Positions 4,997-36,766 of a stretch of DNA of 64,000 bases are shown here, piece by piece. Within the stretch, counting starts at the first letter, position 1; each line of letters begins with the position of its first letter. The notes below the pieces were generated by a model. The model ran no database searches and was not told the DNA's origin. It was given only the letters and a program-made list of their open reading frames with translations. Location: the sequence record MN988561.1. One strand, written 5' to 3'. Both the position numbers and the translations under genes were made by a program.

Positions 4997-5024
4997 AGCG
5001 AAGAGGAGGGTGCATAGCCTTCCT
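4997..5024 (+). promoter_or_regulatory. bipartite motif AGCGAA-N13-AGCCTTCCT, copy 1 (candidate phage promoter)
   Basis: Exact match; ends 9 nt upstream of tRNA-Ser. The motif is seen directly; promoter function is inferred. Confidence 0.6.
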
Positions 5025-5033
5025 CTCTTGTCA

Positions 5034-5123
5034 GGAGAGGTGCCCGAGTGGTTTAAGGGACTCGTCTACTAAACGAGCGTACGTGAAAGCGTACCATGGG
5101 TTCGAATCCCATCCTCTCTGCCA
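5034..5123 (+). tRNA. tRNA-Ser (anticodon ACU)
   Basis: GGAGAGG/CCTCTCT acceptor, G73-CCA, long variable arm, CTCGT-ctACTaa-ACGAG anticodon arm. Confidence 0.9.
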
Positions 5124-5145
5124 ATTATTAAGAATTGACTTACAT

Positions 5146-5568
5146 ATGTCTATTAGTTTGTATAACTACAAGATCAACGTCATTCGAGTTATCGATGGCG
5201 ATACGATTTATGCAGAAATTGATCTAGGATTCAATATTCGCATCAAAGATTACATTCGATTTGATGGAGTTGATACTCCTGAGACTCGAGGATCAACAGC
5301 TACTGACTTAGGTCAGTGGGCTAAGATGTATACTAGTCTTTGGCTCAGAGGTCTTGAGGGACAATTTGATGAGTTGAAGACTCTGAATCTGGATGAGGCT
5401 TGGTCTAAAGTACCTCGTTCGGATACTGGTCCATGGCTTACTAATCTTTATCTGGATAGTAAGTCATATAATGATCGTGAGAAATACGGTAGGATCCTTG
5501 GATATATCTACCGTAATGAAGCTCTGTCTTTGAATACCAGACTACTCCAAGAAGGTCTCAAGAAATAG
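5146..5568 (+). CDS. thermonuclease (SNase-like) family nuclease
   Basis: RVIDGDT, FDGVDTPE and DREKYGRILG motifs. The ORF-track start at 5083 lies inside the tRNA, so the later Met was used. Confidence 0.85.
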   Translation: MSISLYNYKINVIRVIDGDTIYAEIDLGFNIRIKDYIRFDGVDTPETRGSTATDLGQWAKMYTSLWLRGLEGQFDELKTLNLDEAWSKVPRSDTGPWLTNLYLDSKSYNDREKYGRILGYIYRNEALSLNTRLLQEGLKK

Positions 5569-5661
5569 GAGAACTCTAATGGGTGACGACTCTAGCATCA
5601 TACTTTAACCTGTAGGTTCATACAGAAGAGGACTTCCTCTTTACCTGCAGGTAAGGAGAGT

Positions 5662-5946
5662 ATGATGGATAAGTTCAATCGAGCAGTACGTAGACATCAT
5701 CGTAAACGTCTACGTGAAAATAGAAAGATCTACCACGGAGGACTCCAGTGGGTGATCGATCGTGAGAAAGCTAAGTCTTTCAGAGTAAATACTCCTACGC
5801 CATGTTCATGTCATATGTGTGGCAATCCTCGTAAGTTCTTTAAAGAACTCACAATTCAGGAGCGTAAATTCGCCTTAGATTACGCGAAGTCGAGCTCCAT
5901 TAACCTTCCTTATTGTCAGGAGGAATTGTCCTCCGATGATTTCTGA
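5662..5946 (+). CDS. small basic protein with TPTPCSCxxCGNPR motif
   Basis: AGGAG Shine-Dalgarno, Arg/His-rich N-terminus, Cys cluster. Confidence 0.7.
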   Translation: MMDKFNRAVRRHHRKRLRENRKIYHGGLQWVIDREKAKSFRVNTPTPCSCHMCGNPRKFFKELTIQERKFALDYAKSSSINLPYCQEELSSDDF

Positions 5947-5974
5947 ACCACTGAAAACTTATTCGGTTGGATTC

Positions 5975-6002
5975 AGCGAAGTCAGGGTTGGTTAGCCTTC
6001 CT
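5975..6002 (+). promoter_or_regulatory. bipartite motif copy 2
   Basis: TTC-AGCGAA-gtcagggttggtt-AGCCTTCCT, intergenic, upstream of tRNA-Lys. Confidence 0.6.
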
Positions 6003-6077
6003 TGTTACGAGGTCGAGGTTTTCGATCTTGAAGAATTCGATTTTTAGAGTACAAGTTTATAAAGAATCTCGTAATAT

Positions 6078-6154
6078 GTACGCTTAACTCAGCTGGATAG
6101 AGTAGCGACCTTTTAAGTCGTTGGTCATCGGTTCAAGTCCGATAGCGTACACCA
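6078..6154 (+). tRNA. tRNA-Lys (UUU)
   Basis: Full cloverleaf, ctTTTaa loop, CCA end. Confidence 0.95.
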
Positions 6155-6281
6155 TATTGCATACATTAGAAGACATAGTTTTTAGAGTAAATTTTGAGTG
6201 GTGTGCCTGTACCTATGGTACAGAGTGCTCGGAGATCCTCAGGTAGTTGGCGACTTGAGGATCTCTGCTACACTTTATGAC

Positions 6282-6359
6282 GGTCCTGTACGTTCAATTG
6301 GATAGACGGCTGGATTTCTACTCCGGAGGTTGGGTGTTCGAGTCACTCCAGGATCGCCA
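6282..6359 (+). tRNA. tRNA-Arg (UCU)
   Basis: Full cloverleaf, ttTCTac loop, CCA end. Confidence 0.93.
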
Positions 6360-6377
6360 TAAATTGTAGGTTATATT

Positions 6378-7016
6378 ATGGAATGCCCTTATTGTTCTAA
6401 GCTCTTTAAGAGTGAGAGATCAATGTCTGGACATAAGGGATTCTGTAAATCAGGACCCTATCGTGCAGATACGATTGATCGTAATGCAAAAGCTAAGTTT
6501 AAATTAAGAAAAGTCAGACAACCTAGAGGTGTCGACAAGAGGACTCTTCCTGCGTCTTGTAAATTCTGTGACCGAGAATTTGAAAATCTATTTCAGAAGA
6601 ATGGTCATCAAGTTAGATGTGAGAAGAATCCTAATCCAGCTGAATCGTCAGGTCCAATAGGATATAAACACACTGAAAGTACTCGAAAGAAGCTCTCTGA
6701 CGCTCGAAGAGCCTTCCTTATTGAGAACCCAGATAAGCAATTCTTCAATTATCGTGATTCTAAAGCAGAGCACGATCTTGCTAAGAAATTTGATGAAGTA
6801 GGTATCCTCTACGTAAGACAGTATCGAGGATCTGACTGGAAGAGAGCTTACAAGGCAGACTTCTATCTTCCAGAGTTTAATTACATCATTGAAGTTAATG
6901 GTGAGTTCAAGTATGAGAACGGTAAGCTGCATCAGTATTACCTAAACCGACAGAGATATATTGAATCATTTGGATATAAAGTGATTCAAGTACACGCGTA
7001 TGAAGTGTACGAGTAG
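6378..7016 (+). CDS. putative homing endonuclease (Zn fingers + NUMOD3-like + DUF559/Vsr-like nuclease)
   Basis: CxxC..H..C repeats, KHTESTRKKLS motif, YKADFY...IIEVNG nuclease motif. Confidence 0.7.
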   Translation: MECPYCSKLFKSERSMSGHKGFCKSGPYRADTIDRNAKAKFKLRKVRQPRGVDKRTLPASCKFCDREFENLFQKNGHQVRCEKNPNPAESSGPIGYKHTESTRKKLSDARRAFLIENPDKQFFNYRDSKAEHDLAKKFDEVGILYVRQYRGSDWKRAYKADFYLPEFNYIIEVNGEFKYENGKLHQYYLNRQRYIESFGYKVIQVHAYEVYE

Positions 7017-7023
7017 TTAAAGT

Positions 7024-7201
7024 ACATCTTGGACATAGCTAGTGAGTTGGTTCTTCGTGAGTCATATCGTTTCTCCTTTCGGTATGAGTGTATGACAAGC
7101 TATGAGTTCTGGCATTCTATCTACCTTTAATCCTTTTCTGTAGATAGAATAACGCACGCGTCAAGATGTTATCCTCGAAAGTCAGACAGAGGATCTCAGT
7201 T
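7024..7201 (+). ncRNA. structured RNA motif, copy A (multistem junction plus pseudoknot)
   Basis: P1 7024-32/7161-69, P2 7034-40/7098-104, P3 7114-24/7140-50, AACGCACGCG, P4 7171-76/7189-94. The P4 loop pairs with the junction TCTGGC. Confidence 0.7.
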
Positions 7202-7348
7202 TTATAATCTAGATAACGATATGCCCGATCGTTATGTTCCAGTAAGATCAAGTCTTCCTCCCAGACGTTACTCATTCCCCTCTTGAGTTTATCTTAACGC
7301 ACGCGCTAGATTATAGGTCTCTGAAAACTGGACAGGAGACCATCAGTT
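7202..7348 (+). ncRNA. structured RNA motif, copy B
   Basis: Same architecture with different stem sequences; shares AACGCACGCG, a GAAA-led 12-nt loop and TCAGTT. Confidence 0.7.
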
Positions 7349-7453
7349 CACTAGGGAGTCAGAAGTATGTAATTCCTTGTCTTACCTGGAGGTCACATGC
7401 GGGTGATCTCGGTTACTTTGAGGTTTACTACTTCTGACTCCTGCCGGATTTAT

Positions 7454-7529
7454 TCTAGGTTAGCCAAGTTGGTAAGGCACGAGTTTTTGGTGCTCGCATA
7501 CCTAGGTTCGAACCCTAGACCTAGAACCA
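7454..7529 (+). tRNA. tRNA-Gln (UUG)
   Basis: Cloverleaf, ttTTGgt loop, CCA end. Confidence 0.92.
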
Positions 7530-7574
7530 CTTTTTAGATGTTGATTAAGTTCCGTCTAACAATGAGAGAATACA

Positions 7575-7832
7575 ATGAGTAAAGCATCTGAAGTTATCAA
7601 GAAGCTGAATGAGACTAAACCTTCAGAAGATCTTCTGAAGAGCGAGGTCCAGGAAATTAAGCAGAAGATGATTAATCAAGGCATCGTCAGACCTGACTAT
7701 GCTGTTGAAAGATTTAGTCTGGTTAGTGATAGATTCAGAAATGTCTTGATACACGGTATTGTTCATGGAACAAATACTGCAGGATGGAGAGATCAGATTA
7801 AAGATTTGAGATCTCAGAATTTGATTAGTTAG
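7575..7832 (+). CDS. small protein with MSKA...LNE N-terminal peptide
   Basis: ORF between tRNAs; N-terminus shared with six other ORFs. Confidence 0.7.
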   Translation: MSKASEVIKKLNETKPSEDLLKSEVQEIKQKMINQGIVRPDYAVERFSLVSDRFRNVLIHGIVHGTNTAGWRDQIKDLRSQNLIS

Positions 7833-7906
7833 CGGACGTAACTCAGAGGTAGAGTGCAATCCTTCCAAGTTTGAAGTCGTGGGTTCGATTCCCATCGTCC
7901 GCTCCA
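7832..7906 (+). tRNA. tRNA-Gly (UCC)
   Basis: Cloverleaf, ctTCCaa loop, U73-CCA. Confidence 0.95.
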
Positions 7907-7907
7907 T

Positions 7908-7984
7908 GCATCCTTAGCTCAGTTGGTTAGAGCATCAGTTTTACATACTGAGGGTCACTAGTTCAAGTCTAGTAGGATGTACCA
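7908..7984 (+). tRNA. tRNA-Val (UAC)
   Basis: Cloverleaf, ttTACat loop, CCA end. Confidence 0.95.
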
Positions 7985-8003
7985 GTTATATTAAACTATT
8001 CGT

Positions 8004-8079
8004 GGGAGATTAGTTCAGTGGTTAGAACCGTCAGCTCATAACTGATTAAACAGAGGTTCGAATCCTCTATCTCCTACCA
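8004..8079 (+). tRNA. tRNA with CAU anticodon (elongator Met or Ile2)
   Basis: Cloverleaf, ctCATaa loop, paired 1-72. Met versus Ile2 cannot be resolved by eye. Confidence 0.9.
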
Positions 8080-8082
8080 AGT

Positions 8083-8159
8083 ACCACCTTAACTCAGATG
8101 GATAGAGTACTCGACCGATAATCGAGTTGTCATTGGTTCAAGTCCAATAGGTGGTACCA
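8083..8159 (+). tRNA. tRNA-Ile (GAU)
   Basis: Cloverleaf, ccGATaa loop, CCA end. Confidence 0.93.
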
Positions 8160-8170
8160 ACTTACTTTAT

Positions 8171-8866
8171 GTGAATAAAATGGAATGTCCTTACTGTAAT
8201 AAGATGTTCAAGAATGAAAGATCAATGTCTGGTCATAAAGGTTACTGTAAATCAGGACCTTATAGACTAGAAACAATTGATCGTAATTCTACTGCTAAAT
8301 CAAAATTAAGAAAGCCTAGATCACCTCAAGGTCCTGATAAAAGAACTCTTCCTTCAAAGTGTAAATTTTGTGAGAAGGAATTTGAGACTCTTTACCAGAA
8401 GAATGGTCATCAAGTTTACTGCGAGTCAAATCCTGATAAATCCATTCCATGTGACTGGACAGGAAAATCTCATTCAGATGAGTCTAAGAAGAAGATCGCT
8501 GAGTCTGTAAGTCAGTACTATAAAGAAAATCCTGATAAGGCTTATTATGTTAGATACCATAAGTCCTCAGGTGAGTCTTATGCTGAGAAATACTTCAGAG
8601 AAGTCTTGCCAGGATTAGACTTTATCCAAGAGTATACTGTTGGACCTTATCGTCTGGATTTTGCATTCTTGAATAAGAAGATCGACCTCGAGATTGATGG
8701 TCAATTTCATTACAGAGATCCTCGAACTATCGAGACAGATCGTAAGCGAACTGAGTATCTTCAAAGTCAAGGATGGACTGTGATCAGAGTAAACTGGTCA
8801 GAGTTTAAGAAGTTAAATCTTGAGTCTAGAACTTCTTTTATAGAAGATCTAAAGAGTCAATTATAA
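8171..8866 (+). CDS. putative homing endonuclease (Zn fingers + NUMOD3-like + DUF559)
   Basis: Paralogue of 6378-7016 over the N-terminal ~85 aa; YRLDFA...LEIDGQFH...DRKRTEYLQSQGWTVIRV is DUF559-like. Confidence 0.8.
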   Translation: MNKMECPYCNKMFKNERSMSGHKGYCKSGPYRLETIDRNSTAKSKLRKPRSPQGPDKRTLPSKCKFCEKEFETLYQKNGHQVYCESNPDKSIPCDWTGKSHSDESKKKIAESVSQYYKENPDKAYYVRYHKSSGESYAEKYFREVLPGLDFIQEYTVGPYRLDFAFLNKKIDLEIDGQFHYRDPRTIETDRKRTEYLQSQGWTVIRVNWSEFKKLNLESRTSFIEDLKSQL

Positions 8867-8942
8867 CGCAGGGTATTTCAGTGGTCAGAAGGCGAGATTC
8901 ATAACCTCGAGGTCATCGGTTCGAATCCGATCCCTGCAACCA
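8867..8942 (+). tRNA. tRNA-fMet-like (CAU)
   Basis: C1:A72 mismatch typical of initiators. The anticodon stem lacks the canonical three G-C pairs. Confidence 0.85.
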
Positions 8943-9208
8943 GTTTCAGTTAACGGAGCCAGCGTATCTAGACTATAACATCTATCTCACAGATGTCTAG
9001 ATCGTAGTGAGTTTGAGCGTAGCCTTATGGTATCGTTCTGGCTGCACCGTTTCATATATGCGGTCCTGAGATGGGATAGGACTCTATCTGAGTGCACAAG
9101 GATAGATGCACCTAAGCGGTCTCTGCGATGAGATCCACCGCTCCATAATCTGTAATCTTGATGTGAACAGTGTCGTAGATATCTCATCAGTAATATCGAG
9201 TTAATGAG

Positions 9209-9709
9209 ATGATGTATATCCGATACGCTTTATACTTACCAGTTAATCTACTACTTGTACTGTCAGCATATGTGTTCTCACCTATTCTAGCAGCACTTTC
9301 TCTAATTACAGGTCCGACGCTCCCTGGAGTACTTCAATGGTTCTCTACTACGGATGACAATCTAGACGGTGGAATTCATCAGAATGTCTCAGGCTATAAG
9401 TCTGGACTGAAAGGATTCTCACTATGGTGGCAACGTACATGTTGGATCTGCAGAAATCCTGCTCATGGATGGCAGTCTAACTTACTAGGTATGTCTGTTG
9501 ATGGATTCGAATTTATCGAGAAGATCGATATTTCTACTCCTAAATGGTATCTGATGAAGAATAATAAGCATACGTTCTTCATGTGGAAGAAGGATCAACC
9601 ACTCTTCTCCAAGTATTATCTGAAACTATGGTTCGGATGGCTGAATACTGCATATGATGGTAAGAATCATCATTATGAATTTCAGATCGGACTGAAGAGT
9701 AAAAATTAA
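9209..9709 (+). CDS. hypothetical membrane-anchored protein
   Basis: N-terminal hydrophobic helix; Trp-rich WFSTTDDNLDG and WICRNPAHGW motifs. Confidence 0.75.
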   Translation: MMYIRYALYLPVNLLLVLSAYVFSPILAALSLITGPTLPGVLQWFSTTDDNLDGGIHQNVSGYKSGLKGFSLWWQRTCWICRNPAHGWQSNLLGMSVDGFEFIEKIDISTPKWYLMKNNKHTFFMWKKDQPLFSKYYLKLWFGWLNTAYDGKNHHYEFQIGLKSKN

Positions 9710-9719
9710 TATAGGTTAA

Positions 9720-9797
9720 GTCGCTATGACGGAGTGGTCCAACGTAATGGTCTGCAAAACCATATAACCGCTGGTTCGAATCCAGCTAGCGACTCCA
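9720..9797 (+). tRNA. tRNA-Cys (GCA)
   Basis: Cloverleaf, ctGCAaa loop, U73-CCA. Confidence 0.92.
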
Positions 9798-9807
9798 AGG
9801 TTAAACT

Positions 9808-9918
9808 ATGAAGTATGTAATCATTCTAGGATTGCTTCTAGCAGGGTGTAAAACTGCTGAAGAGCGTTACTACTCAGATTTGTCTACAGGTGTAGGCATA
9901 GTTCTAAAGGATAAATAA
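9808..9918 (+). CDS. small lipoprotein (36 aa; not in ORF track)
   Basis: Translates MKYVIILGLLLAGCKTAEERYYSDLSTGVGIVLKDK; canonical lipobox LAGC. Confidence 0.6.
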   Translation: MKYVIILGLLLAGCKTAEERYYSDLSTGVGIVLKDK

Positions 9919-10035
9919 ATGTCAACTATTATTGTTGCAGTTGTAGCATTCATTGCAGGTGGATACGCTAGTAAGAATTTTGGATTCGATCTAGTTGAGT
10001 ATGCCAAGGCTGCTTATAACAAGTTTAAGGCATAA
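9919..10035 (+). CDS. small single-TM protein (38 aa; not in ORF track)
   Basis: [38 protein letters not shown]; starts immediately after the lipoprotein stop codon. Confidence 0.55.
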
Positions 10036-10044
10036 TGCCTTTGT

Positions 10045-10121
10045 CGGAGCGTAGCGCAGCCAGGTAGCGCAATAGTTTTGGGTACTATGGGTCGTCTGTT
10101 CGAATCAGACCGTTCCGACCA
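10045..10121 (+). tRNA. tRNA-Pro (UGG)
   Basis: Cloverleaf, ttTGGgt loop, CCA end. Confidence 0.95.
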
Positions 10122-10123
10122 AT

Positions 10124-10200
10124 ATTCCCTTGGACAAGCGGTTTAAGTCATCTCACTTTCACTGAGAAGATCACGGGTTCAAATCCCGTAGGGAATACCA
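10124..10200 (+). tRNA. tRNA-Glu (UUC)
   Basis: Cloverleaf, ctTTCac loop, CCA end. Confidence 0.93.
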
Positions 10201-10205
10201 ATTTC

Positions 10206-10233
10206 AGCGAAGTTAGGCTCTTGTAGCCTTCCT
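10206..10233 (+). promoter_or_regulatory. bipartite motif copy 3
   Basis: TTC-AGCGAA-gttaggctcttgt-AGCCTTCCT, intergenic. Confidence 0.6.
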
Positions 10234-10298
10234 TCTTGTATCGGTTAGTAGTGTCAATCCGAGCTATTAATGTGAGTATTAAGTATCGGATTCTATGA

Positions 10299-10395
10299 TC
10301 GAGAGTGGTGGAACGGTAGACACATCCAGATAAAAGAGCAGTTTCTGGACGCTACTTAAATATGCGTGCTAGTTCAAGTCTAGCCTCTCGAACCA
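10299..10395 (+). tRNA. Leu-type tRNA with aberrant 15-nt anticodon loop (identity undetermined)
   Basis: TCGAGAG/CTCTCGA acceptor, A73-CCA, Leu-type D arm, long variable arm and normal T arm. The anticodon stem TCCAG/CTGGA closes ATAAAAGAGCAGTTT. Confidence 0.7.
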
Positions 10396-10429
10396 ATATT
10401 ATATGCTCATTCTTAGATAGGGATTACCA

Positions 10430-11191
10430 ATGGGTAAATTACATGAAATCCTCGCGGTTGAAGGTGACCTCGTAGGTGTAGCCAAGAAAGTTACTGAAGA
10501 AGCTATCGCTACGTTCAGCAAGCGTGCAGATCACTTCAGTGAGACTACTACTGAACAGAAATACTTTGCAGACGATGAGCAGCATCTCAATACGTCTGAA
10601 TCCAAGGCAATGGTGACCACTGTACCTGACAAGCTCAAGTACATTGTTGATCCTATTGCTAAGTTCTTCGATGCGTATTACTCGAAGGAAGCTACCAATC
10701 AGATCGCTAAGGCTGATGTAGAAGTCAAGGGTACGACGATCTTTGCAGATGTTCCAGCAACGGTTCTCCTAGGTATGGAGACTAAGCTTCGTGAACTCCG
10801 TAAGGTCTATGAATCGATTCCGACTCTCGCTCCTGGTGTATTCTGGGAGAAGGATGTTAATCGTCCGGCAGGTGTATACCGTGCTCGTGAACCTGAAGTC
10901 CGATTCGTTACGAAGAAGACTGTACGTCCGATCACTCTTTCACCTGCTACTGACAAGCATCCTGCTCAGATTGAGAAGGTCAATGAAGATCTTCCTGTCG
11001 CTAAGAAGACGATTACTACCTGGAGTAGTATGATGTCGTCAGCTGACAAGAGCAAGGTTCTCGAACGTATCGATACTCTGATCCGTGCAGTTAAGACTGC
11101 TCGTCAGCGTGCAAATGGTACTGAGGCAGTATCTGCTTCATCCTTCGGTGATAAGATTTTCGACTTTATCCATCAAGGTATCGTCGACTAA
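10430..11191 (+). CDS. conserved uncharacterised coiled-coil protein (KLHEILAVE / ATDKHPAQ family)
   Basis: 253 aa ORF with SD. It resembles, from memory and unverified, a widespread hypothetical family of bacteria and phages. Confidence 0.8.
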   Translation: MGKLHEILAVEGDLVGVAKKVTEEAIATFSKRADHFSETTTEQKYFADDEQHLNTSESKAMVTTVPDKLKYIVDPIAKFFDAYYSKEATNQIAKADVEVKGTTIFADVPATVLLGMETKLRELRKVYESIPTLAPGVFWEKDVNRPAGVYRAREPEVRFVTKKTVRPITLSPATDKHPAQIEKVNEDLPVAKKTITTWSSMMSSADKSKVLERIDTLIRAVKTARQRANGTEAVSASSFGDKIFDFIHQGIVD

Positions 11192-11349
11192 GAATTGAAT
11201 GTTGAGGCTACCAGCATAGCCTCCATTCTCCGACTCCCATAGGGACAAACTCAGCCTTAAACTTATTGTGAGTATCAAGAATTTATCTTCTGCTCAAGAT
11301 AAACAAACTAGCTTTGTATCCCTAAAACTTAGACAAGATTTACCAGATC

Positions 11350-11494
11350 CAGTCGCAGCATATCTCTATTTTCCCGGAAGGTCGTGAGTTCGAGTCTCAT
11401 CACCGCACCCAATTACCTACAATTGGACTGATGCGGTGTAGCTCAGTGGTAGAGCGTTCGTTTTATCTTGAAGATATTCTGTCGATGATGACTG
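11350..11494 (+). ncRNA. circularly permuted tRNA-like RNA
   Basis: T arm 11384-11400, then acceptor 3-prime strand CACCGCA-C-CCA, a 20-nt linker, acceptor 5-prime strand TGCGGTG and D arm; closed by CAGCATATCT/AGATATTCTG and CAGTC/GACTG. Confidence 0.8.
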
Positions 11495-11645
11495 TATGAA
11501 TCTATCGTAACGATTAAATATGCTCCGCGATAGGAGTGTATGTTACATTAACAAGAACAGGGTGGTTCCATGCGGAATGTGGTTCCACCCACCTCTTCTT
11601 ATATAAGATCATTCGGATTTTATATAATAAGAATTTGAGGTTTAC

Positions 11646-11933
11646 ATGAGTAAGGCATCAAAATTACTTAGCAAGATCAATGAATTGGACGGTGGATCTA
11701 AGGACCCTCTGGTTCAATCAGGTTGTGCTAAGATTGTAGCTTATTGTCAGAAGAAGAGTCTTAGTGCTGCTGAGATTGAGCAGATTAAGGATCAGATTCT
11801 TGACGATGAGCCTCTTCACAATCATACTGCAGATACACTAGCTGCAATCGGTCTTGATATGAATATCAAGTCTGAGCTTGTAGCGATTGGTCTCAGTAGT
11901 GATGAAGCTGATGCGATTATGAATGTAACCTAA
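11646..11933 (+). CDS. small protein with MSKA...INE N-terminal peptide
   Basis: GAGG SD; shared N-terminal motif. Confidence 0.75.
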   Translation: MSKASKLLSKINELDGGSKDPLVQSGCAKIVAYCQKKSLSAAEIEQIKDQILDDEPLHNHTADTLAAIGLDMNIKSELVAIGLSSDEADAIMNVT

Positions 11934-11940
11934 CAGACAT

Positions 11941-12014
11941 GCTCCTATAGTTAAGTGGTATAACTTCGCCTTTGTAACGCGAGTTCCTCAGTTCGATTCT
12001 GGGTGGGAGCACCA
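11941..12014 (+). tRNA. tRNA-Thr (UGU)
   Basis: Cloverleaf, ttTGTaa loop (one mismatch in the anticodon stem), CCA end. Confidence 0.9.
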
Positions 12015-12066
12015 TGATTTCTTGAATCCTAACTCATAGTGAGTTAGAGATAACAAGGAAGATAAA

Positions 12067-12363
12067 ATGAGTGATGAAGTTAATAAGACTGTCGTAACTA
12101 GAGAAGAACATCGAGGTACTGCTTGTAAGTACTATGATACTCGTGGTAAAGCATACGATGCTATTATCACTGAAGTATGGGGACCTCAATGCGTCAACCT
12201 TGTCTATGTCAATGATGTAGAAGGTCAGAAAGATTCTTATGGTCAGAAATTGATCAGATCATGTTCTGTGATGCATGGTAGTGTTCAGCAAGCTCATGGC
12301 AACTATTGGATGTTACCAGGAGAGACTCGAGTTTCTAAATATGTTCATGATTCAGCTATTTAA
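12067..12363 (+). CDS. hypothetical protein (98 aa)
   Basis: ORF with AAGGA SD. Confidence 0.75.
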   Translation: MSDEVNKTVVTREEHRGTACKYYDTRGKAYDAIITEVWGPQCVNLVYVNDVEGQKDSYGQKLIRSCSVMHGSVQQAHGNYWMLPGETRVSKYVHDSAI

Positions 12364-12437
12364 TTAACTTCTGTGATCTTCCGACCTTGACGCGACGAAG
12401 TAGCAGATAACTCCATCTTCCATAATTGTTATCACGT

Positions 12438-12513
12438 GGGACCGTAGCTCAGATGGGAGAGCGTCTGATTTGCATTCAGAAGGTCATCGGTTCGATCCCG
12501 ATCGGCTCCACCA
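12438..12513 (+). tRNA. tRNA-Ala (UGC)
   Basis: Cloverleaf, G3:U70, ttTGCat loop, CCA end. Confidence 0.95.
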
Positions 12514-12523
12514 CTTTTTATAT

Positions 12524-29192: not shown

Positions 29193-29920
29193 GTCGAGCA
29201 AAATCACTGATCGACATGATTAAAGGAACCAAGAACGAGTCTGGTGACGATGACGACGAAATCTCAAATCGTCGTCGTGGTGGTACTTGGATTGATCCTC
29301 ATCATGTTGACGCAGCATCCAAGAATCTGAAGCGTACTCAGTCATTCTACAAGAAGGCTAGTAATGCTAGCTCAGTTGAAGATCAAGAGTATTGGTTAGC
29401 TCGAGTCTTTAACAAGAATGCTGTTGCTAAGAGAATCTCCTCTGGATTCTATAACAAGGAAGCTAAGGCAGGAGTCGTAGGCGTCGATGACGTTGAAGAT
29501 CTGTCAGCATCTCTTGTTACAGGTAATCCAAGAGCATCGGGTCGTGTTACGACTAAGGATCACACACGTAATCCTGAAGAGATCTTTGCTGCTAACCAGA
29601 TCGTTAAAGCTCTCTACGATACGATTGACAAGAAGTGGCCTGGACGTCCTCAGAACAAGATGGTTCTGACATACTTCCTCAAGGTCAATAAAGCTGATCA
29701 TCTTATTAACTTTAAGCTTCCATACGATGATCGTGTGGAAGAAATCATCTCTTCTATTGAGAAATATGCTAAAGACAATAACTCCAAGATTACTTGGACT
29801 ACTCCTAAGCAGTTTCAGAATTTTTCAGGTATTGAAGACAGAATGTATGCAAAGGTCATGCAGTTCCTAGCAGATAATGCTGTAGAATTGGGTGCTCTTA
29901 TCATTCGAGGTAAGAAATAA
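29189..29920 (+). CDS. hypothetical protein (MSRA... N-terminus)
   Basis: 243 aa ORF overlapping the polA stop. Confidence 0.75.
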   Translation: MSRAKSLIDMIKGTKNESGDDDDEISNRRRGGTWIDPHHVDAASKNLKRTQSFYKKASNASSVEDQEYWLARVFNKNAVAKRISSGFYNKEAKAGVVGVDDVEDLSASLVTGNPRASGRVTTKDHTRNPEEIFAANQIVKALYDTIDKKWPGRPQNKMVLTYFLKVNKADHLINFKLPYDDRVEEIISSIEKYAKDNNSKITWTTPKQFQNFSGIEDRMYAKVMQFLADNAVELGALIIRGKK

Positions 29921-30267
29921 TGGACCAGAGAGTACTTGACGTTCTAGCTCAAGGATATATTAATCGTGAGCTTACACTACCAGCCGCTGATCTATCTAAG
30001 GCTGTTATTTATATTGTTAATTATCATGTTAGACATAAGACAAGTGGACTGGCAGATCTAAAGACTGCTTATGGTAGTCCTGAGTCTTCTAATCTGGCAG
30101 TTAGGTTCTACTCTACAGGTCTATTTAATGGTGTTGTAGATAATGATTCTAAGAGCTCAGATCTATTCTGGTCTCTATTCAATTCGATGACTACATCTCT
30201 GATGATTGAGTCCATCAATGAATCGTTAGCTGAATCCTCGAAAGAAGTTGAAGTGATCGCCGAATAA
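29920..30267 (+). CDS. hypothetical protein
   Basis: 115 aa, translationally coupled. Confidence 0.7.
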   Translation: MDQRVLDVLAQGYINRELTLPAADLSKAVIYIVNYHVRHKTSGLADLKTAYGSPESSNLAVRFYSTGLFNGVVDNDSKSSDLFWSLFNSMTTSLMIESINESLAESSKEVEVIAE

Positions 30268-30362
30268 AGGCGCTTACTTGTTGGGTAAATGGGTGCAGTT
30301 AGGCTCTTGGAGGGATTCTTATTCGGTGAGCCCTCCAAGGCTTCCAGAAAGAGGGTAATGTA

Positions 30363-31019
30363 ATGGCTAGCGATAGACAGATGAAAGGTTACATCTGGGG
30401 AGAGCAAATCCTGGATCATGCTCACATTGAGCATTATGCAAGGGCGATGAGATCCGATGATGTACGTACCGAGGAGTACTGGTACCAGGCAGTATTTCAT
30501 GGGAAGAACCACTCTAAGGTTCTTCAGTCGGAAGTCTTTCATAAGAAAATCCGCAACAACGTTACAAATAAAGTAGAAGTTGAGACTCTGGTTTCTACTT
30601 CTAACTCTGACGTCGTTAATGATGTTCTAGCAGAGGAGAGAAAGAATGAAGTAAAATATTCTCGAGTTATCGAGGATGATAAGGTCGGTAATATGTCCGA
30701 CTATCTTCCCGATGCAACTGTTGGGTTCTCAGTTATTATCAGAGAAATAGCTGACAAATGCAACGATGATGAAATCAAGGTCCTGAGCTACTTTGTATGT
30801 CAGGAACATCTGGATAATATCCTATTCGAGGGGAATTCGATTCATTCATCAAACGATCGCTTCAATCGTACGATCCTAGGTATCTGGGAAAAGAATGTGA
30901 AGAGCATCAATGATCTGAATCGATTTGTAGGTACTCGTGCTCGTGCTGATAAAGCTAGGTGGAGACTCTGCAATCTCTTGAAGAAGGAGTATCCTGAACT
31001 CTTGTCAGGAAAACGATGA
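30363..31019 (+). CDS. hypothetical protein, possibly a divergent sigma-like factor
   Basis: 218 aa with SD. The C-terminal TRARADKARWRLCNLL loosely resembles sigma region 4.2, and the gene lies just before the RNAP gene. Confidence 0.45.
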   Translation: MASDRQMKGYIWGEQILDHAHIEHYARAMRSDDVRTEEYWYQAVFHGKNHSKVLQSEVFHKKIRNNVTNKVEVETLVSTSNSDVVNDVLAEERKNEVKYSRVIEDDKVGNMSDYLPDATVGFSVIIREIADKCNDDEIKVLSYFVCQEHLDNILFEGNSIHSSNDRFNRTILGIWEKNVKSINDLNRFVGTRARADKARWRLCNLLKKEYPELLSGKR

Positions 31020-31255
31020 GTCCATCTAACAAGCCCTATGACCCAAAGTTAGACACAATCATCTACGAAAATAGACATCCTGAAACGGGTTTGTGCATCT
31101 CGGTGCATAAATACGGAAGCAGTGAACCGAAGATCAAGTTAGGTCCAAGAATCGTCGGTGACGACTCCAAACCTGTCTACTTGAAATTAGGTAGAATATC
31201 TATAAACGAGTTTTTGTGGATATCCGAGGTCCTAAAACCCTACGTTAAATCTTAG
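31016..31255 (+). CDS. small protein, possibly PC4-like ssDNA-binding
   Basis: ISVHKY..KIKLGPR..LKLGRISINEF pattern resembles the PC4 fold; weak. Confidence 0.45.
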   Translation: MSPSNKPYDPKLDTIIYENRHPETGLCISVHKYGSSEPKIKLGPRIVGDDSKPVYLKLGRISINEFLWISEVLKPYVKS

Positions 31256-31267
31256 AGGATCTAAAAC

Positions 31268-34200
31268 ATGCAACTTTCTCTGAAGCCAGTCTCTCCAGAA
31301 TCTGTACTCTTGACTTCACAAGGAGAGGTCAAGTCGTATGAGACTCTGAACTTCAAGACAGGTCTACCTGTTCGAGACGGTCTCTTGTGCCAGAAGGTAT
31401 TCGGACCGATTAGAGACTACGTATGTGAATGCGGCAAGTACGATGGTAAGAAATACCAGGGACATACTTGTGAGAAGTGCGGTGTTACGGTAGCGAGTTC
31501 ACGTGCTCGTACTGTGAGAATGGGTCATATTGATCTTCAAGTTCCCATTCTTAATCCGTTGATGATCGAGTCGATCGAATCGATTATAGGTCTCCCATCC
31601 AGAAAGATGGAGGACTTTATGAAGAACAAGATCTGCCTGAAATTTTCAGCATCTGGTACAGGTAATCTTGTTCGTAAGGACGGTACACGAGGTATCGCGT
31701 ATTTTGTAGATCCTAAGGAATCTGATCCTCGATCTCCTACTCTGCAGCATACGAAGTCGTCTCTGGTTCTTTATGAACTCTTGACGGATCTCGATATTGA
31801 AGAGACGCTCAAAGTCAATGGATCCAAGATCCTGAAGACCTATGTGCAGAAGAACTTCCCTCTTTCTAATCTCTTCATTCGTTATCTACCGGTATCTCCA
31901 GCAGGATACCGTCCAGTCACTCGTATGAGAAACTACTATTCTCAGCATCCCAAGAATGACCTTTATCAGAAGATCATTCGACGTACTCTGCGAGTGAAGG
32001 AACTGGTTAATATCAATGCAGACTCAATGATTCTTCAGGAAGAGGCAGGCATTCTGTATAAGTCTGTCGATCAACTCTTCACTGGAGGAGCTCGAGATGG
32101 CGATGGGAACCCTCTTCCTGGAACCATTGAGAAGATGATGGGTAAGAGAGGTATTCTCCGAGGAAATCTTCTCGGTAAGCGTACCGACTACTCTGGACGT
32201 TCAGTTATCACTTCAGCAGGTGATCGTGTAGAAGTGGACCAGATTGGTCTACCTCGTAAGATGGCATACATCTTGTTTCGTCCTTTCATTCTCCGTTATC
32301 TGATGACGGAGTATCTGGATCATTATACTGAAGCACTGAAGCACTACGAGAAGAAGACTGTTATCGCACTGAAGTCTCTCGAGATGGTAGCTAAGGATTA
32401 TCCGATCATCATGAATCGTGCTCCTACGCTTCATAGATACGGTGTAATGTCTTTCCGTACCAAGTTGGTAAATGGTAAGGCTATCCTCGTTCATCCGATT
32501 GTATGTTCTCCATTCAATGCAGACTTCGACGGAGATACTGTAGCTATCCACTTGCCTCTTTCAGCTAAGTCTGTTCAGGAGTGCAAAGATTATCTCATGC
32601 CTCAGAACAATCTCCTGTCTTCACTTGATGGTGATCCGATCATCAATATGTCGCACGAGATGGTTATCGGTCTTGCTATCATGTCTCGTATTAAGGATCA
32701 TGATAAGGGATTCGGTACATTCCGACGTATGGATGAGCTCGAGTATCTTCATACTGTCACCAATCCTCAGACTAGCCGTCCTACACTTGAGATCTACGAT
32801 AGAATCAAGTGGAAAGATGAACGAGGAGTGACAGAGACGTGCTATGGTCGACTTCTTCTCGAGCAGACATTCAAGACCAAGAATCTTCCGAAGGACTTCT
32901 CTAAGAAGACTATTCGTCGGATGATCAGTGATGCGTACGACAAGCTTGGACCTGATGAACTGATTAAGGTACTGGATGTAGCTACTCAGCTTTCATTCAA
33001 GTATGCTACGAACTCTGGTTTCTCAGTTTCGATTGATGATTGTAAGGTACCTTCTACGAAACCTGCTAAGATTGCGAAAGCTAGAGAGCAGGAAGCTGAG
33101 AATTATCGTCAATTCGATAACAATGAAATCAATCTTGCAGAGCGTCGAGAGAACAATATTCGTCTCTGGAACGATGTCTTTGAAGATCTTCATCACGATT
33201 GGATGAAAGAAGCAGGTGAGGACAATCCGGTAGTTCTTATGTATACTACTGGTGCTCGTGTTAGTAAGTCTCAGGTCAATCAGATCGGAGTCGCTAAGGG
33301 TCTTGTATCCAATGCACTCAATCAGATCATCGAGAAGCCTATGGTTAACTCCTTCCGTGAAGGATTGTCGACGTTTGAGTACTTTGCATCTTGCTCTGGA
33401 TCTCGTAAGTCCATGGCAGACAAGAAGAATCTGACTCCCAAGTCTGGTTATCTTACACGTCGAATGATTACTGCTAGCCGAGATTTCTTCATTAATTCAG
33501 ATGATTGTGGTACCGATAAGGGTATCATGCGTACGATGAAGTCCTCGTATGGACGTTATCGTTGCGACAATGGTGAGATGATTGGTACGAACAATAGTGA
33601 AGAACTCGTTAAGGTTCGTAGTCCGATTCATTGTGAGTCGCATGGTGGTATCTGCGTTAAGTGCTACGGTATTGATCCTGCTAAGCGTAAGATCGTCACG
33701 AAGGGGTCCAACGTAGGAGCTATTGCAGCTCACTCGTTGACTGAATCTACAACTCAGATGACGATGCGTACCTTCCATACATCTGGTGCAGTCGTTCTGA
33801 AGGATAGTCCGATGGTCATTACTGCCCAGAAGGATGGTAAGATCAGCTGGGATACTCTTCATCCTGTCTACAGCAAGATTCATGTTGTTGCAGATATGGA
33901 AGATTGGGATACACCTCTCAATGATCGATTGACGTATACAGTTCATAACAAGATGTCTCGCATTCTTGTTAAGGATGGTCAGTCTGTCAAGAAGGGTGAT
34001 CCTCTAGCGATCTACGTTGATGAAGATCTTGAGAGCGACGACGTCAGTGGATCGCTCCCTAAGATTGAATCTCTGTATGAAGGTCGAGTACCTCCGAAAG
34101 CGTACAAGTCAGTTATCTCGAAGGTAGCTGGTAAGATTGGTATTAACATCGGAGATGAAGGTCTTAAGATCTTCGTTGATGGTGAATACCAAGGTACTGC

Positions 34201-34651
34201 TCATCCTAAGACTCCGGTATTCGTTGCTCAAGGTCAGTATGTTGAAGCTGGTCAGACTCTCTCGTTTGGTTCTCCAGACGTAGTAGGTTTGTTCAAGGAG
34301 ACAAAGGATCTTGATCTCGCTTACAAGGTCTTTGAGAAGACTCTGATGGATATCTACAATAAGGAAGGTCTCCAGCCAGTACCAACTCATTCGGAGATGA
34401 TCTTCAGAGCGATGTCTAATCTGGTATACACCGAGAGTGGTCCTTATGGTCTTCGATCCCATGGAGACAAGGGTAGCATTATGCTGAAGGGTATTACTCA
34501 GATTGGTGCGAATCATCCGTCCTGGTTGAAGTCAATCGGATTCGGATGGGTAGCTCAGACGATCAGAACTTCTGCTGTGAATCTTGCTACCACGTACGAT
34601 CTTCCTACCGAACGTCTGATGTCTGGTGAATTGATTTACGAGGATAAATAA
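31268..34651 (+). CDS. rpoC: DNA-directed RNA polymerase beta-prime subunit (bacterial-type, phage-encoded)
   Basis: DGLLCQKVFGP..CECGKY..CEKCGV, RMGHI, LLGKRTDYSGRSVI, NRAPTLHR, catalytic NADFDGD, GYLTRR, QMTMRTFH. Confidence 0.95.
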   Translation: MQLSLKPVSPESVLLTSQGEVKSYETLNFKTGLPVRDGLLCQKVFGPIRDYVCECGKYDGKKYQGHTCEKCGVTVASSRARTVRMGHIDLQVPILNPLMIESIESIIGLPSRKMEDFMKNKICLKFSASGTGNLVRKDGTRGIAYFVDPKESDPRSPTLQHTKSSLVLYELLTDLDIEETLKVNGSKILKTYVQKNFPLSNLFIRYLPVSPAGYRPVTRMRNYYSQHPKNDLYQKIIRRTLRVKELVNINADSMILQEEAGILYKSVDQLFTGGARDGDGNPLPGTIEKMMGKRGILRGNLLGKRTDYSGRSVITSAGDRVEVDQIGLPRKMAYILFRPFILRYLMTEYLDHYTEALKHYEKKTVIALKSLEMVAKDYPIIMNRAPTLHRYGVMSFRTKLVNGKAILVHPIVCSPFNADFDGDTVAIHLPLSAKSVQECKDYLMPQNNLLSSLDGDPIINMSHEMVIGLAIMSRIKDHDKGFGTFRRMDELEYLHTVTNPQTSRPTLEIYDRIKWKDERGVTETCYGRLLLEQTFKTKNLPKDFSKKTIRRMISDAYDKLGPDELIKVLDVATQLSFKYATNSGFSVSIDDCKVPSTKPAKIAKAREQEAENYRQFDNNEINLAERRENNIRLWNDVFEDLHHDWMKEAGEDNPVVLMYTTGARVSKSQVNQIGVAKGLVSNALNQIIEKPMVNSFREGLSTFEYFASCSGSRKSMADKKNLTPKSGYLTRRMITASRDFFINSDDCGTDKGIMRTMKSSYGRYRCDNGEMIGTNNSEELVKVRSPIHCESHGGICVKCYGIDPAKRKIVTKGSNVGAIAAHSLTESTTQMTMRTFHTSGAVVLKDSPMVITAQKDGKISWDTLHPVYSKIHVVADMEDWDTPLNDRLTYTVHNKMSRILVKDGQSVKKGDPLAIYVDEDLESDDVSGSLPKIESLYEGRVPPKAYKSVISKVAGKIGINIGDEGLKIFVDGEYQGTAHPKTPVFVAQGQYVEAGQTLSFGSPDVVGLFKETKDLDLAYKVFEKTLMDIYNKEGLQPVPTHSEMIFRAMSNLVYTESGPYGLRSHGDKGSIMLKGITQIGANHPSWLKSIGFGWVAQTIRTSAVNLATTYDLPTERLMSGELIYEDK

Positions 34652-34654
34652 AGG

Positions 34655-34852
34655 ATGCAAGACCTATCTCAACTATGTGAAGTTGAGATGGAGAAGTTAG
34701 TTGAAATACTAATGAGATCGACTCACTTGACACTCGACGGTGTTGAGCTGAGTCGATCTCATGAATATCATAATAGCCCATCTGTCTCTACAATTAAAAC
34801 TCATAAAGTCCTTGATGACTCATACATTACAGTTAGACTGAAATATGTATAA
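34655..34852 (+). CDS. hypothetical protein
   Basis: 65 aa with AAGGA SD. Confidence 0.55.
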   Translation: MQDLSQLCEVEMEKLVEILMRSTHLTLDGVELSRSHEYHNSPSVSTIKTHKVLDDSYITVRLKYV

Positions 34853-35558
34853 CTTGCAATACGATGATGGAATTCTTAAATCAAATAGGGAGTCTCTCGT
34901 AAACATACGAGCTCCATTCTTCAAACGGATTGATCGACGATCTCGCAAGTCGTCCATCGAGAGATTAATGATCTCACCTGATACAACAAGAAATTGTAGT
35001 CAGATTAAGAGATTTCTCGTTCCGTTCAACGATAAGTACTTGTACAGCATGCATGTGACTTATCGTGACGACTTAAAGTGTCAATCTATTTATGACACTA
35101 ACAAGTCTCTCAAGCGAATCCTCCGATCTAAAATGTTAATGTCAGCTGTGAACAGGATAAATGAGTATCCTCAACTCAAAGCAGACATATTGTCTGTAAT
35201 CAAGCTTGTAGTTAATTCTTGGGAGTTTGATGGTCTTATCACAGACATTGAATGGCTCCAGGATGAAAATCTACTGGATACTGTGATATCTAAGTGGAAA
35301 CTGAAGAAGTACGAATCCTCTACAGAGCGAGGGTCAGTGATCAATCTCTTAATAAAGAGTTTTGATGGAGTTCCACTTAATCTTCTATCTCATCTAGAGA
35401 TGAAGAAAATCAGTATTGAGGATACTGACATTGAGGACGTTAAGTTTAAATGTCCTCTGATATTAATGCGATCGAATTCATCTTGTGCAGGATTCATATC
35501 TAAGTCCTTGGATAAAGGACTACCTGTGAGTCTGTTCAAGATTGATATAAAAGAGTAA
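34845..35558 (+). CDS. hypothetical protein
   Basis: 237 aa, last gene of the + strand block. Confidence 0.7.
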   Translation: MYNLQYDDGILKSNRESLVNIRAPFFKRIDRRSRKSSIERLMISPDTTRNCSQIKRFLVPFNDKYLYSMHVTYRDDLKCQSIYDTNKSLKRILRSKMLMSAVNRINEYPQLKADILSVIKLVVNSWEFDGLITDIEWLQDENLLDTVISKWKLKKYESSTERGSVINLLIKSFDGVPLNLLSHLEMKKISIEDTDIEDVKFKCPLILMRSNSSCAGFISKSLDKGLPVSLFKIDIKE

Positions 35559-35615
35559 AAATAAAGGCCACTAGGCGGGACCCTTCTCGGAGGATTCACC
35601 TAGTGGCCTATTTTT
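35557..35615. terminator. bidirectional terminator at the strand switch
   Basis: AGGCCACTAGG/CCTAGTGGCCT inverted repeat flanked by an A tract and a T tract, between convergent genes. Confidence 0.8.
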
Positions 35616-35620
35616 GTGTC

Positions 35621-35875
35621 TTATGGAAGAAGTGGTACGAAACTCTTCAGCTTATTGTACACATCATCCTGCTTACCCATTTCAGTCGAATACTTATCAA
35701 GAATCGTCTGATTATCTGGGAATTCATTACCTTGATTAGCTACCCAGTCGACATAATCATGCCAATCCTGGTCATCGTGAAGATCACGATGCTGCTTAAT
35801 CAGATTTGCATATTCAGCATCTGTGAATTCATGCAATGATGAAAGCTTCTCAAGAATGTCTTTAGCTCTACTCAT
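35621..35875 (-). CDS. small acidic protein (MSRAKDILEKLSSLHE), putative internal head protein
   Basis: Shared N-terminal motif; downstream of the gp68-like gene. Confidence 0.7.
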   Translation of the reverse strand: MSRAKDILEKLSSLHEFTDAEYANLIKQHRDLHDDQDWHDYVDWVANQGNEFPDNQTILDKYSTEMGKQDDVYNKLKSFVPLLP

Positions 35876-35886
35876 ATTAATCTCCG

Positions 35887-36342
35887 TCAAGCTACTACAG
35901 CGAGTTCATTACTTGGTACTTCATGAACGTCACCATCGACTTCGATCATGCAGATTTCACCGTTCACTTTAAGAACAGTGCCTGTACCGTGAACTGATTC
36001 AACAGTGTTATTAAGAAGGATCTCACGACCATTCTTATCTTCGCATTCGATGAATGCTCTCTGACCATTGTCAGGAGTGTAATCAGGAGCTTTACCTGTT
36101 ACGCCATCTGCATTCACATTGTTCCAGTGACCGTATGCGTCAAAGTATAGTACGTCGAGATCCGAACTATCTTGGAACTTGTCACGTTCAGCCATAGCAT
36201 CCTTGAAAGGCATTGCTAGAGGACCTAGGATAACTTTATTGTTGGTACGATTAACAATGTACGTACCAATGCGTTTACTGGTATCTTCGTCGATACCTGT
36301 GATCTTTGACAGATCACTAATCAGACCTGATGCTCTGCTCAT
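35887..36342 (-). CDS. hypothetical protein (MSRAS...DE N-terminus, SH3-like C-terminus)
   Basis: 151 aa; shared N-terminal motif. Confidence 0.7.
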   Translation of the reverse strand: MSRASGLISDLSKITGIDEDTSKRIGTYIVNRTNNKVILGPLAMPFKDAMAERDKFQDSSDLDVLYFDAYGHWNNVNADGVTGKAPDYTPDNGQRAFIECEDKNGREILLNNTVESVHGTGTVLKVNGEICMIEVDGDVHEVPSNELAVVA

Positions 36343-36370
36343 ATTAAATATCCTTGTTAGCGTTTATGAC

Positions 36371-36670
36371 TTAGAGACCAGCAGCCTTGCGCTTTCTCAT
36401 AGTCATTTGACGCTTACGAGAGATAGCAGCTTGCTGTCCTCTCTTCTTACGAGCACCCATCTTCGCAGCCTTACGCTTAGCGATGATCTCACCGGCACTC
36501 ATCTTGACGCAAGTCTTACCATCAATCTTGTAACCTGGAGGGCAATCAAGAATAACACTCTTGGCTCCACCTCTGAATGTTACTTTCTTCTTAGGAGCAG
36601 CTTCACTAGCTGGAATAGAAGACTCATAGTAAGCATCAATTTTAGTGATCAAATCTGCAGATTTAGACAT
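36371..36670 (-). CDS. prohead core protein, T4 gp68-like
   Basis: CPPGYK..CVKMS and basic C-terminus RKRQMTMRKRKAAGL, resembling the gp68 tail RKRKKALKRRKALGL. Confidence 0.6.
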   Translation of the reverse strand: MSKSADLITKIDAYYESSIPASEAAPKKKVTFRGGAKSVILDCPPGYKIDGKTCVKMSAGEIIAKRKAAKMGARKKRGQQAAISRKRQMTMRKRKAAGL

Positions 36671-36738
36671 AATGTACATCCATTTTAGTTTATTTAATGA
36701 GGATTATCACTTTACACAATTATAAAGTGTGCACAAAG

Positions 36739-36766
36739 AGGAAGGCTTATGTCGCCTTCCTTCGCT
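36739..36766 (-). promoter_or_regulatory. bipartite motif copy 6
   Basis: On the - strand: TTC-AGCGAA-ggaaggcgacata-AGCCTTCCT, co-oriented with and upstream of the gp68-like gene. Confidence 0.6.

Follow-up and report, generated by a model that had tools for sequence, protein, structure and literature searches.

Copies of a bipartite element, AGCGAA-N13-AGCCTTCCT (class A hereafter), recur in a 64,000-nucleotide (nt) stretch of DNA, the window, that is 100% identical to bases 124001–188000 of Rhizobium phage RHph_TM61 (TM61; MN988561.1). Class A is intergenic, co-oriented with the genes that follow it, and built of two blocks at a fixed distance that is kept at orthologous sites, the profile of a bipartite promoter of the alternative-sigma type. 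We consider class A elements very probably to be phage-specific promoters. On the overall reading, which we hold with slightly better than even confidence, some 25–35 such promoters would be read by a re-programmed bacterial-type multisubunit polymerase containing the beta-prime subunit encoded by the phage. Promoter function, the start site, the composition of the enzyme, and the identity of its specificity factor are features that we infer.

An earlier note on this DNA, made from its letters alone, had listed six copies with a 13-nt spacer, and an exact-pattern search recovered all six at the same coordinates and on the same strands (Table 1). One hundred dinucleotide-preserving shuffles of the window gave 0 exact matches. 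By the GenBank annotation, every copy lies between genes and points toward the next gene, as the note had held, and the trinucleotide TTC stands directly 5' of four of the six, again in agreement with it. Four copies precede or abut transfer RNA (tRNA) genes, and the minus-strand copy stands before the three genes, 'prohead core protein' and two more, with which the minus-strand block closes. The inventory was correct for exact copies and missed both the degenerate ones (5883–5910, 6691–6718, and 20393–20420) and a parallel class of elements, class B, described below. The site at 20393–20420 is a candidate internal promoter and carries the weakest evidence among those listed.

For the genome-wide analysis, the window and the remainder of MN988561.1 were joined. 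The exact pattern is present ten times in the whole genome, and the downstream box AGCCTTCCT 27 times, against ~1.7 expected under a second-order Markov model. All 27 boxes point in the direction of local transcription (binomial p 7e-9). Intergenic DNA, which amounts to 8.6% of the genome as left by a crude gene caller, is touched by 20 of them (p 2e-15). A weight matrix built from 25 sites and applied with a cut-off of 12 bits or more returned 35 hits, compared with 0.4 in shuffled genomes; each of the 35 is co-oriented, and 26 touch intergenic DNA. The aligned consensus reads aTT.AGCGAA-(n t n a n g g ...)-AGCCTTCCT-t.TT(g). The spacers, which had been called unrelated, turned out to share a weak consensus, ~nTnAnGg (TTAGGnTC-like), that is also found in class B. 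Class A sites are distributed between 52 kb and 161 kb of the genome, with one more at the head of the plus-strand block (202699) and, within the first 50 kb, a small number of weak hits that mostly fall inside genes. They front the polymerase operon, the tRNA clusters, and the genes for thymidylate synthase, helicase/primase, exonuclease, and gyrase. Within the structural block of 40 kb, only one intergenic copy is present, at 36739–36766.

The strongest evidence of function comes from related genomes, in which orthologous sites were located via the encoded proteins. Phage RHph_Y65 is ~98% identical overall to TM61, and nine orthologous class A sites were compared between the two: the hexamer showed 0/54 differences and the box 1/81, compared with 13/117 in the spacer and 16–20% in the flanks. 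Of the 13 spacer positions at the polymerase-operon site (25144–25171 in TM61), 8 differ, with the two blocks and the distance between them intact, and the motif at 10206–10233 is identical in RHph_Y65 with a different upstream flank. A Joint Genome Institute (JGI) metagenome contig, whose 5'-nucleotidase is 70% identical to that of TM61, carries TTCAGCGAA-N13-AGCCTTCCTT between the same two genes, with a different spacer and different flanks. More distant still is a 13.6-kb Logan contig (L155) with the same gene order, in which beta-prime is 55% and the nucleotidase 45% identical to their TM61 counterparts. It has GGCGAA-N13-AGCCTTCCT 5' of the nucleotidase gene and, on the opposite strand, AGCGAA-N13-AGCCTTCTA 5' of the 'prohead core' orthologue, mirroring the TM61 copy at 36739–36766. 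Such conservation of the blocks and of the 13-nt spacing in diverged relatives argues more strongly than any other observation for the function of both. Exact-pattern scans of IMG/VR and of metagenome contigs gave single, chance-level matches per contig (for the metagenomes, among the matches listed). One locus differs in copy number: the variant at 5883–5910 lies 92 bp upstream of the exact copy at 5975–6002, and RHph_Y65 has only one copy here, a chimera flanked on its upstream side like one member of the pair and on its downstream side like the other, which indicates recombination or duplication between promoter copies.

The geometry of the element can be read from the copy at 4997–5024. 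The mature 5' end of tRNA-Ser lies 9 nt beyond the end of this copy, so if the copy drives the tRNA, the start site would fall within 9 nt of the box, in the YYTTG tail, and AGCCTTCCT would sit where a -10 element is expected. We therefore place AGCCTTCCT provisionally at about -14 to -6 and AGCGAA at about -33 to -28, the positions of the -10 and -35 elements of sigma-family promoters.

Other identities fit poorly. The note had argued against a terminator, and we agree: only two of the six copies have a weak 5-bp stem, the other four have no such hairpin, and the long-stem terminators lie elsewhere. RNAalifold on 20 class A sites gave 0 base pairs, with no consensus structure and no covariation, and an Rfam scan of the window matched tRNAs only, with no known structured RNA family at the class A copies. 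The absence of sigma-70 and T4 late signals was likewise borne out, since the promoter scan called none of the six copies as a sigma-70 promoter, with TTGACA-like and TATAAT-like hexamers 16–18 bp apart, and no T4-late match was found at them. Sigma-70-like sites are not enriched (46 versus 52.9 in shuffles). A promoter of a T7-like single-subunit polymerase was rejected as well: such promoters have one contiguous conserved block of ~23 bp, the class A spacer is variable, and no such polymerase domain was found in the large open reading frames (ORFs) scanned. As a separate observation, sigma-70-like sites are depleted in window positions 24000–43999 (34 versus 52.7 ± 6.8 in shuffles), with none at a class A copy.

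Class B was found through k-mer enrichment in upstream regions. It has the form ATAGGT(T/G)CA-N13-AGGGATTCTTCTTTGAAGG, also written ATAGGTKCA-N13-AGGGATTCTTCTTTG with regard to its downstream element, and all 19 of its copies in the genome are intergenic and co-oriented. Class B fronts the early block of small ORFs, the ligase gene, and the operon of gp323, gp324, and beta-prime. At the ligase gene, a strong terminator hairpin with a 20-bp stem (18679–18721) lies directly before the class B site, and the site 5' of gp323 is kept in front of its orthologue in another Logan contig, L031 (39.1 bits; protein 63% identical). With the matrices of the two classes side by side, the upstream element ends and the downstream element starts at the same positions, N13 being common to both. 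The downstream elements share A0, G1, T5, C7, T8, T9, T11, and T12; the classes are told apart by positions 2–4 (CCT in class A, GGA in class B), by position 6, and by the upstream hexamer. Two such classes on one template are what would be expected of one polymerase with two related specificity determinants, and the position of class B before the early block and the beta-prime operon suggests a B-to-A cascade.

We also observed, in both classes, that the spacer is complementary over at least 6 nt to the sequence just 3' of the box, or to the box itself, in 20–26% of sites. The rate in mismatched spacer/downstream pairs is 5–8%, real pairs being 3–4 times higher; examples are found at window positions 13549–13597 and 36739–36766 (GGAAGGC...GCCTTCC).

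The enzyme invoked by the overall reading is suggested by a phage homologue of the RNA polymerase beta-prime subunit with Pfam Rpb1 domains 1–5. It is 33% identical to E. coli RpoC and retains the Zn finger, the clamp helices, NADFDGD, the bridge helix, and the trigger loop; judged by its length, it is without a lineage-specific insertion in the trigger-loop region. In RpoC, the clamp helices bind sigma region 2. By these features, the phage protein is apparently catalytically intact. No beta was detected at E ≤ 1 in the whole genomes of TM61 and of E. coli phage IME392 with E. coli RpoB, Acinetobacter RpoB, and YerA41 beta as queries, while RpoC queries matched the TM61 beta-prime at 1e-75 to 1e-99. 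The hits of YerA41 beta against the whole phage collection included no Rhizobium phage, nor Va2, IME392, EP_H11, or RP13. Having no detectable beta, TM61 would not encode a complete polymerase of its own.

Relatives of TM61 by capsid coincide with its relatives by beta-prime. They belong to a group of phages whose family-A polymerases are fused to UDG and whose DNA is T-hypermodified (PMC9023294, PMC12686479). One of these papers, which lists RHph_TM30, counts the clade of TM61 itself among the candidates for T-hypermodified DNA (PMC12686479). Within the UDG-PolA group, YerA41 and Carin-5 have both beta and beta-prime, whereas the branch of TM61, Va2, and IME392 has beta-prime only. Members of this branch have repeated elements of their own. 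Vibrio phage Va2 carries six intergenic, co-oriented copies of GAACCTC-N4-AACCTTGCT-TCTTGAA in 21.5 kb and a second motif class, ACAACCCTTAGKTGTGTAAGGC, 5' of its beta-prime gene; in IME392, AAACGA-N17-AGCCCGTTC-TTTTGGG is repeated six to seven times in intergenic, co-oriented positions. The boxes of TM61, Va2, and IME392 share the core A(A/G)CC-N5-(C/T)-YYTTG, with an RGGNYC-like spacer element before it. A core common to phages of Rhizobium, Vibrio, and E. coli suggests that the motif tracks the phage lineage, not the host. IME392 carries its beta-prime gene in two halves, of which the one for the C-terminal part comes first and the one for the N-terminal part follows downstream.

The modified base may be relevant to TM61 as well. 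Its 1109-amino-acid family-A DNA polymerase (window 25863–29192, plus strand) is of the same kind as the UDG-fused polymerases of phages with T-hypermodified DNA, and its orthologues in contigs L152 and L155 carry a UDG domain. TM61 DNA may contain modified thymine, and this could matter for the reading of the T-rich box.

The search for a specificity factor covered ~65 proteins with Pfam and PHROGs. The only transcription-related hit was a PC4-like coactivator domain in a 70-amino-acid protein; the protein annotated 'Rho' gave no hit, and TM61 has no homologue of the YerA41 protein taken as its 'sigma factor', which was picked by gene order only. Synteny with beta-prime leaves the gp323/gp321 family, whose members have ~215 amino acids, as the only candidate for specificity factors, by context only. 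The two proteins are distant paralogues (hhalign probability 82%, E 1e-5), gp321 being the only other hit of gp323 among the six-frame ORFs of these genomes (hmmsearch E 1.2e-5). A gp323 homologue stands at the equivalent place in Va2, both paralogues flank the same genes in L155, and in IME392 the gene directly before the N-terminal half of beta-prime encodes a family member (E 2e-8). The family therefore adjoins beta-prime in four lineages (TM61, L155, Va2, and IME392). A search of 1.8 billion representative proteins recovered ~50 members of 205–280 amino acids with no Pfam domain. A first structural model of gp323, from 2 sequences, was poor; a second AlphaFold model, from 32 sequences, had a pLDDT (predicted local distance difference test) score of 77 and was all-alpha with two domains. 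Foldseek against BFVD matched the gp323 model to a 243-amino-acid protein, probably gp321 (E 3.7e-5), and the gp323 profile found nothing among PDB sequences.

In the mechanism that we propose, the class A promoter would consist of a -35-like (TTC)AGCGAA and a pyrimidine-rich -10-like AGCCTTCCT, exactly 13 bp apart and followed by YYTTG, within which transcription is predicted to start. Such promoters would drive nucleotide-metabolism, replication, and tRNA genes. They would be enabled by class B products, including beta-prime and gp323, as the second step of a cascade. The reader would most likely comprise host beta, alpha, and omega with phage beta-prime replacing the host subunit, directed by an unrecognised specificity factor for which the gp323/gp321 family is the sole candidate. 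A link between class A and a beta-prime-containing enzyme seems to us about evenly poised, leaning toward true. A broader proposal concerns the whole clade of phages of Rhizobium, Vibrio, E. coli, and perhaps Ralstonia, with probably T-hypermodified DNA and beta-prime only. These phages would build a hybrid polymerase with host beta, alpha, and omega, in which gp321/gp323 members replace sigma and read hexamer-N13-A-G-NNN-T-N-C-T-T..TTG, paralogous factors giving classes B and A as a cascade; this extension is tentative, and we would not expect it to hold in full.

Several points weigh against the overall reading. With no phage beta, a 'phage polymerase' could only be a hybrid that includes host subunits, for which there is no precedent, and beta-prime may have no part in promoter recognition at all. 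No sigma, gp55, MotA, or AsiA domain was found among the ~65 proteins, a set that did not cover every small ORF, and the gp323 models matched no PDB structure, sigma included. The box AGCCTTCCT is without the A/T-rich character of typical -10 elements. If class B is early and not host-like, it would need a reader before any phage gene expression, and so a hypothetical factor or enzyme delivered by the virion. In the note, class A had been taken as a bipartite promoter read by a phage beta-prime enzyme with its own specificity factor: the first part stands on positional bias and orthologous conservation, and the second is plausible only, beta-prime being apparently intact but with neither beta nor a sigma homologue found.

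In an unlikely but serious alternative, class A promoters are read by the unmodified host core, redirected by a phage sigma-like or sigma-appropriating factor in the manner of SPO1 gp28 or T4 AsiA/MotA. Beta-prime would then be used otherwise, for example for late genes only or for elongation on modified DNA. The geometry of class A suits a sigma-family holoenzyme, and with no phage beta, core subunits of the host are needed in any case; the late structural block, which has no class B and one intergenic class A copy only, also implies that a third mode of transcription must exist. However, the domain survey revealed no sigma, MotA, or AsiA-like protein that could redirect the core, and the box family occurs in phages that infect three genera of hosts and have beta-prime as the transcription gene recognised in all of them.

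It is improbable that the motif is instead the binding site of a phage DNA-binding regulator (a repressor, an activator, or a site of anti-terminator loading) beside the actual promoters. Its two blocks lie on the same face of the DNA, separated by two helical turns, and a variable inverted repeat brackets the box in ~20–26% of sites, as might be expected of such a site. Nevertheless, no other conserved promoter-like element accompanies class A, a separate promoter could not fit downstream in the 9 nt before tRNA-Ser, and the strict co-orientation and the shared, initiation-like YYTTG tail fit a core promoter better. Highly improbable is a role of the motif at the RNA level, be it in termination, in processing, or in pairing with ribosome-binding sites as a pyrimidine-rich mimic of the 16S 3' end. 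Two of the six copies are weakly terminator-like, with 5-bp stems and T-rich tails, and CCUUCCUUCUU has been likened, as an observation only, to the anti-Shine-Dalgarno sequence. However, four copies have no such hairpin, neither consensus structure nor covariation is seen, and these models give no function to the hexamer at its constant distance. Some copies stand before tRNA genes, where no ribosome-binding site exists, and one copy heads the plus-strand gene block (202699).

Table 1. Putative promoter elements and transcription-related genes in the window (window coordinates; weight-matrix scores in bits).
Feature	Position	Strand	Score	Context and remarks
Class A site, exact	4997–5024	+	28.1	9 nt 5' of tRNA-Ser (5034)
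Class A variant CGCGAA-N13-AACCTTCCT	5883–5910	+	38.8	2 mismatches; within 3' end of a small coding sequence (CDS)
Class A site, exact	5975–6002	+	46.3	Top score in the genome; 75 nt 5' of tRNA-Lys
Box-only class A copy	6691–6718			Degenerate
Class A site, exact	10206–10233	+	40.1	6 nt 3' of tRNA-Glu; 196 nt 5' of CDS at 10430
Class A site, exact	13549–13576	+	41.9	17 nt 5' of tRNA-Asn
Class B site ATAGGTTCA-N13-AGGGATTCTTTCTTG	18733–18776	+	43.8	5' of DNA ligase gene
Weaker class A-like site AACGAA-N13-AGACTTCCT	20393–20420	+	26.7	Inside 3' end of ligase gene, before primase gene
Class A site, exact	25144–25171	+	41.2	32 nt 5' of 5'-nucleotidase ATG (5'-nucleotidase/UDG-PolA/gp321 operon)
gp321	29189–29920	+		243 amino acids; distant paralogue of gp323 by profile comparison
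Class B site	30287–30330	+	50.9	5' of gp323–gp324–beta-prime operon
gp323	30363–31019	+		218 amino acids; all-alpha, uncharacterised family; two genes upstream of beta-prime
Phage RNA polymerase beta-prime homologue	31268–34651	+		1127 amino acids
Class A site, exact	36739–36766	-	45.2	68 nt 5' of 'prohead core protein' gene

The record MN988561.1 comprises 203 kb with 40.6% G+C and is classed under Kleczkowskaviridae, genus Cuauhnahuacvirus. Genes 1–327 are encoded on the plus strand and genes 328–376, mostly structural, on the minus strand. The plus strand holds a ~60-kb block of small ORFs of unknown function, nucleotide-metabolism genes, replication genes, and an array of 20 tRNA genes, which extends over window positions 5034–18134 (plus strand) with homing-endonuclease genes in between. 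Rhizobium hosts have a much higher G+C content than TM61, and this difference would fit a need of the phage for its own tRNAs. Also on the plus strand is a TROVE (Ro60-like) gene at window positions 16434–18002, preceded by 1.2 kb of non-coding DNA (15245–16434) that contains a partial tRNA-like Rfam match (15973–16037); the gene and the tRNA-like element may form a phage pair resembling Ro60 and Y RNA. On the minus strand, in window positions 35900–64000, CTCTAAGTAAT- or CTCTATAAGTAAT-like strings lie 30–40 nt before several late-gene start codons (e.g., 36376 and 38666). The CTCTAAGTAAT-like string is a possible, weak candidate for a late promoter and is too short to separate from background. 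The tail-gene region (window 45343–60450) contains nine runs of N, 10–69 nt long, and the record is labelled a partial genome.

The literature that we searched contained no description of the class A and B motifs or of a beta-prime-only phage polymerase. Promoters private to a phage are familiar; unusual in TM61 are an intact-looking beta-prime, no beta, no recognisable sigma, two promoter classes on one template, and the occurrence of related boxes across phages of three host genera. If true, the hybrid enzyme would be an undescribed form of viral takeover of bacterial transcription, by the swap of one catalytic subunit, and it would define a new family of promoter-specificity factors. TM61 thus makes the re-tooling of bacterial transcription by a virus accessible to study, with the motifs as ready targets, and IME392 infects E. 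coli, which eases experiments. The class A and B consensus sequences also allow operons and their timing to be annotated in a genome of mostly 'hypothetical' genes.

The promoters of phiKZ and AR9 are short single AT-rich elements and not a pair resembling -35 and -10. The enzymes of these phages are non-virion multisubunit polymerases composed of homologues of cellular subunits, with no canonical sigma, and the AR9 polymerase is reported to depend on non-canonical bases (PMC7598289, PMC4666361). TM61 resembles them in encoding a homologue of a cellular polymerase subunit, with no canonical sigma found. However, phiKZ and AR9 have full sets of split beta and beta-prime, while TM61 has one intact beta-prime and no beta was found, so it falls outside this type.

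Closer in gene content are YerA41 and Carin-5, which share with TM61 a related capsid, UDG-PolA, beta-prime, and the gene order of 5'-nucleotidase, PolA, and polymerase subunit genes (PMC7354516, PMC9023294, PMC12686479). Both encode beta and beta-prime, whereas TM61 encodes beta-prime only. The authors of the YerA41 work report polymerase subunits and a protein that they call a sigma factor in virions. The annotated promoters of YerA41 are sigma-70 predictions by BPROM and do not correspond to the class A motif.

T4 middle promoters combine a MotA box at -30 with a sigma-70 -10 element, and T4 late promoters have TATAAATA. Like TM61 on our reading, T4 is a large myovirus with temporal promoter classes and a phage-specific upstream element near -30. 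The TM61 sites differ in having neither the TAnnnT -10 element nor TATAAATA, and no homologues of MotA, AsiA, gp55, or gp33 were detected in TM61.

In SPO1, middle and late promoters are read by the phage sigma factors gp28 and gp33/34 on hydroxymethyluracil DNA. The SPO1 and TM61 promoter sequences are unrelated, TM61 has no detectable sigma homologue, and beta-prime is encoded by TM61 and not by SPO1. The DNA of SPO1 contains modified thymine, and the TM61 clade is among the candidate T-hypermodified phages (PMC12686479). On our reading, the two phages are alike in having private bipartite promoters of the -35/-10 type, with a pyrimidine-rich -10 region and several classes that share one geometry in a temporal cascade.

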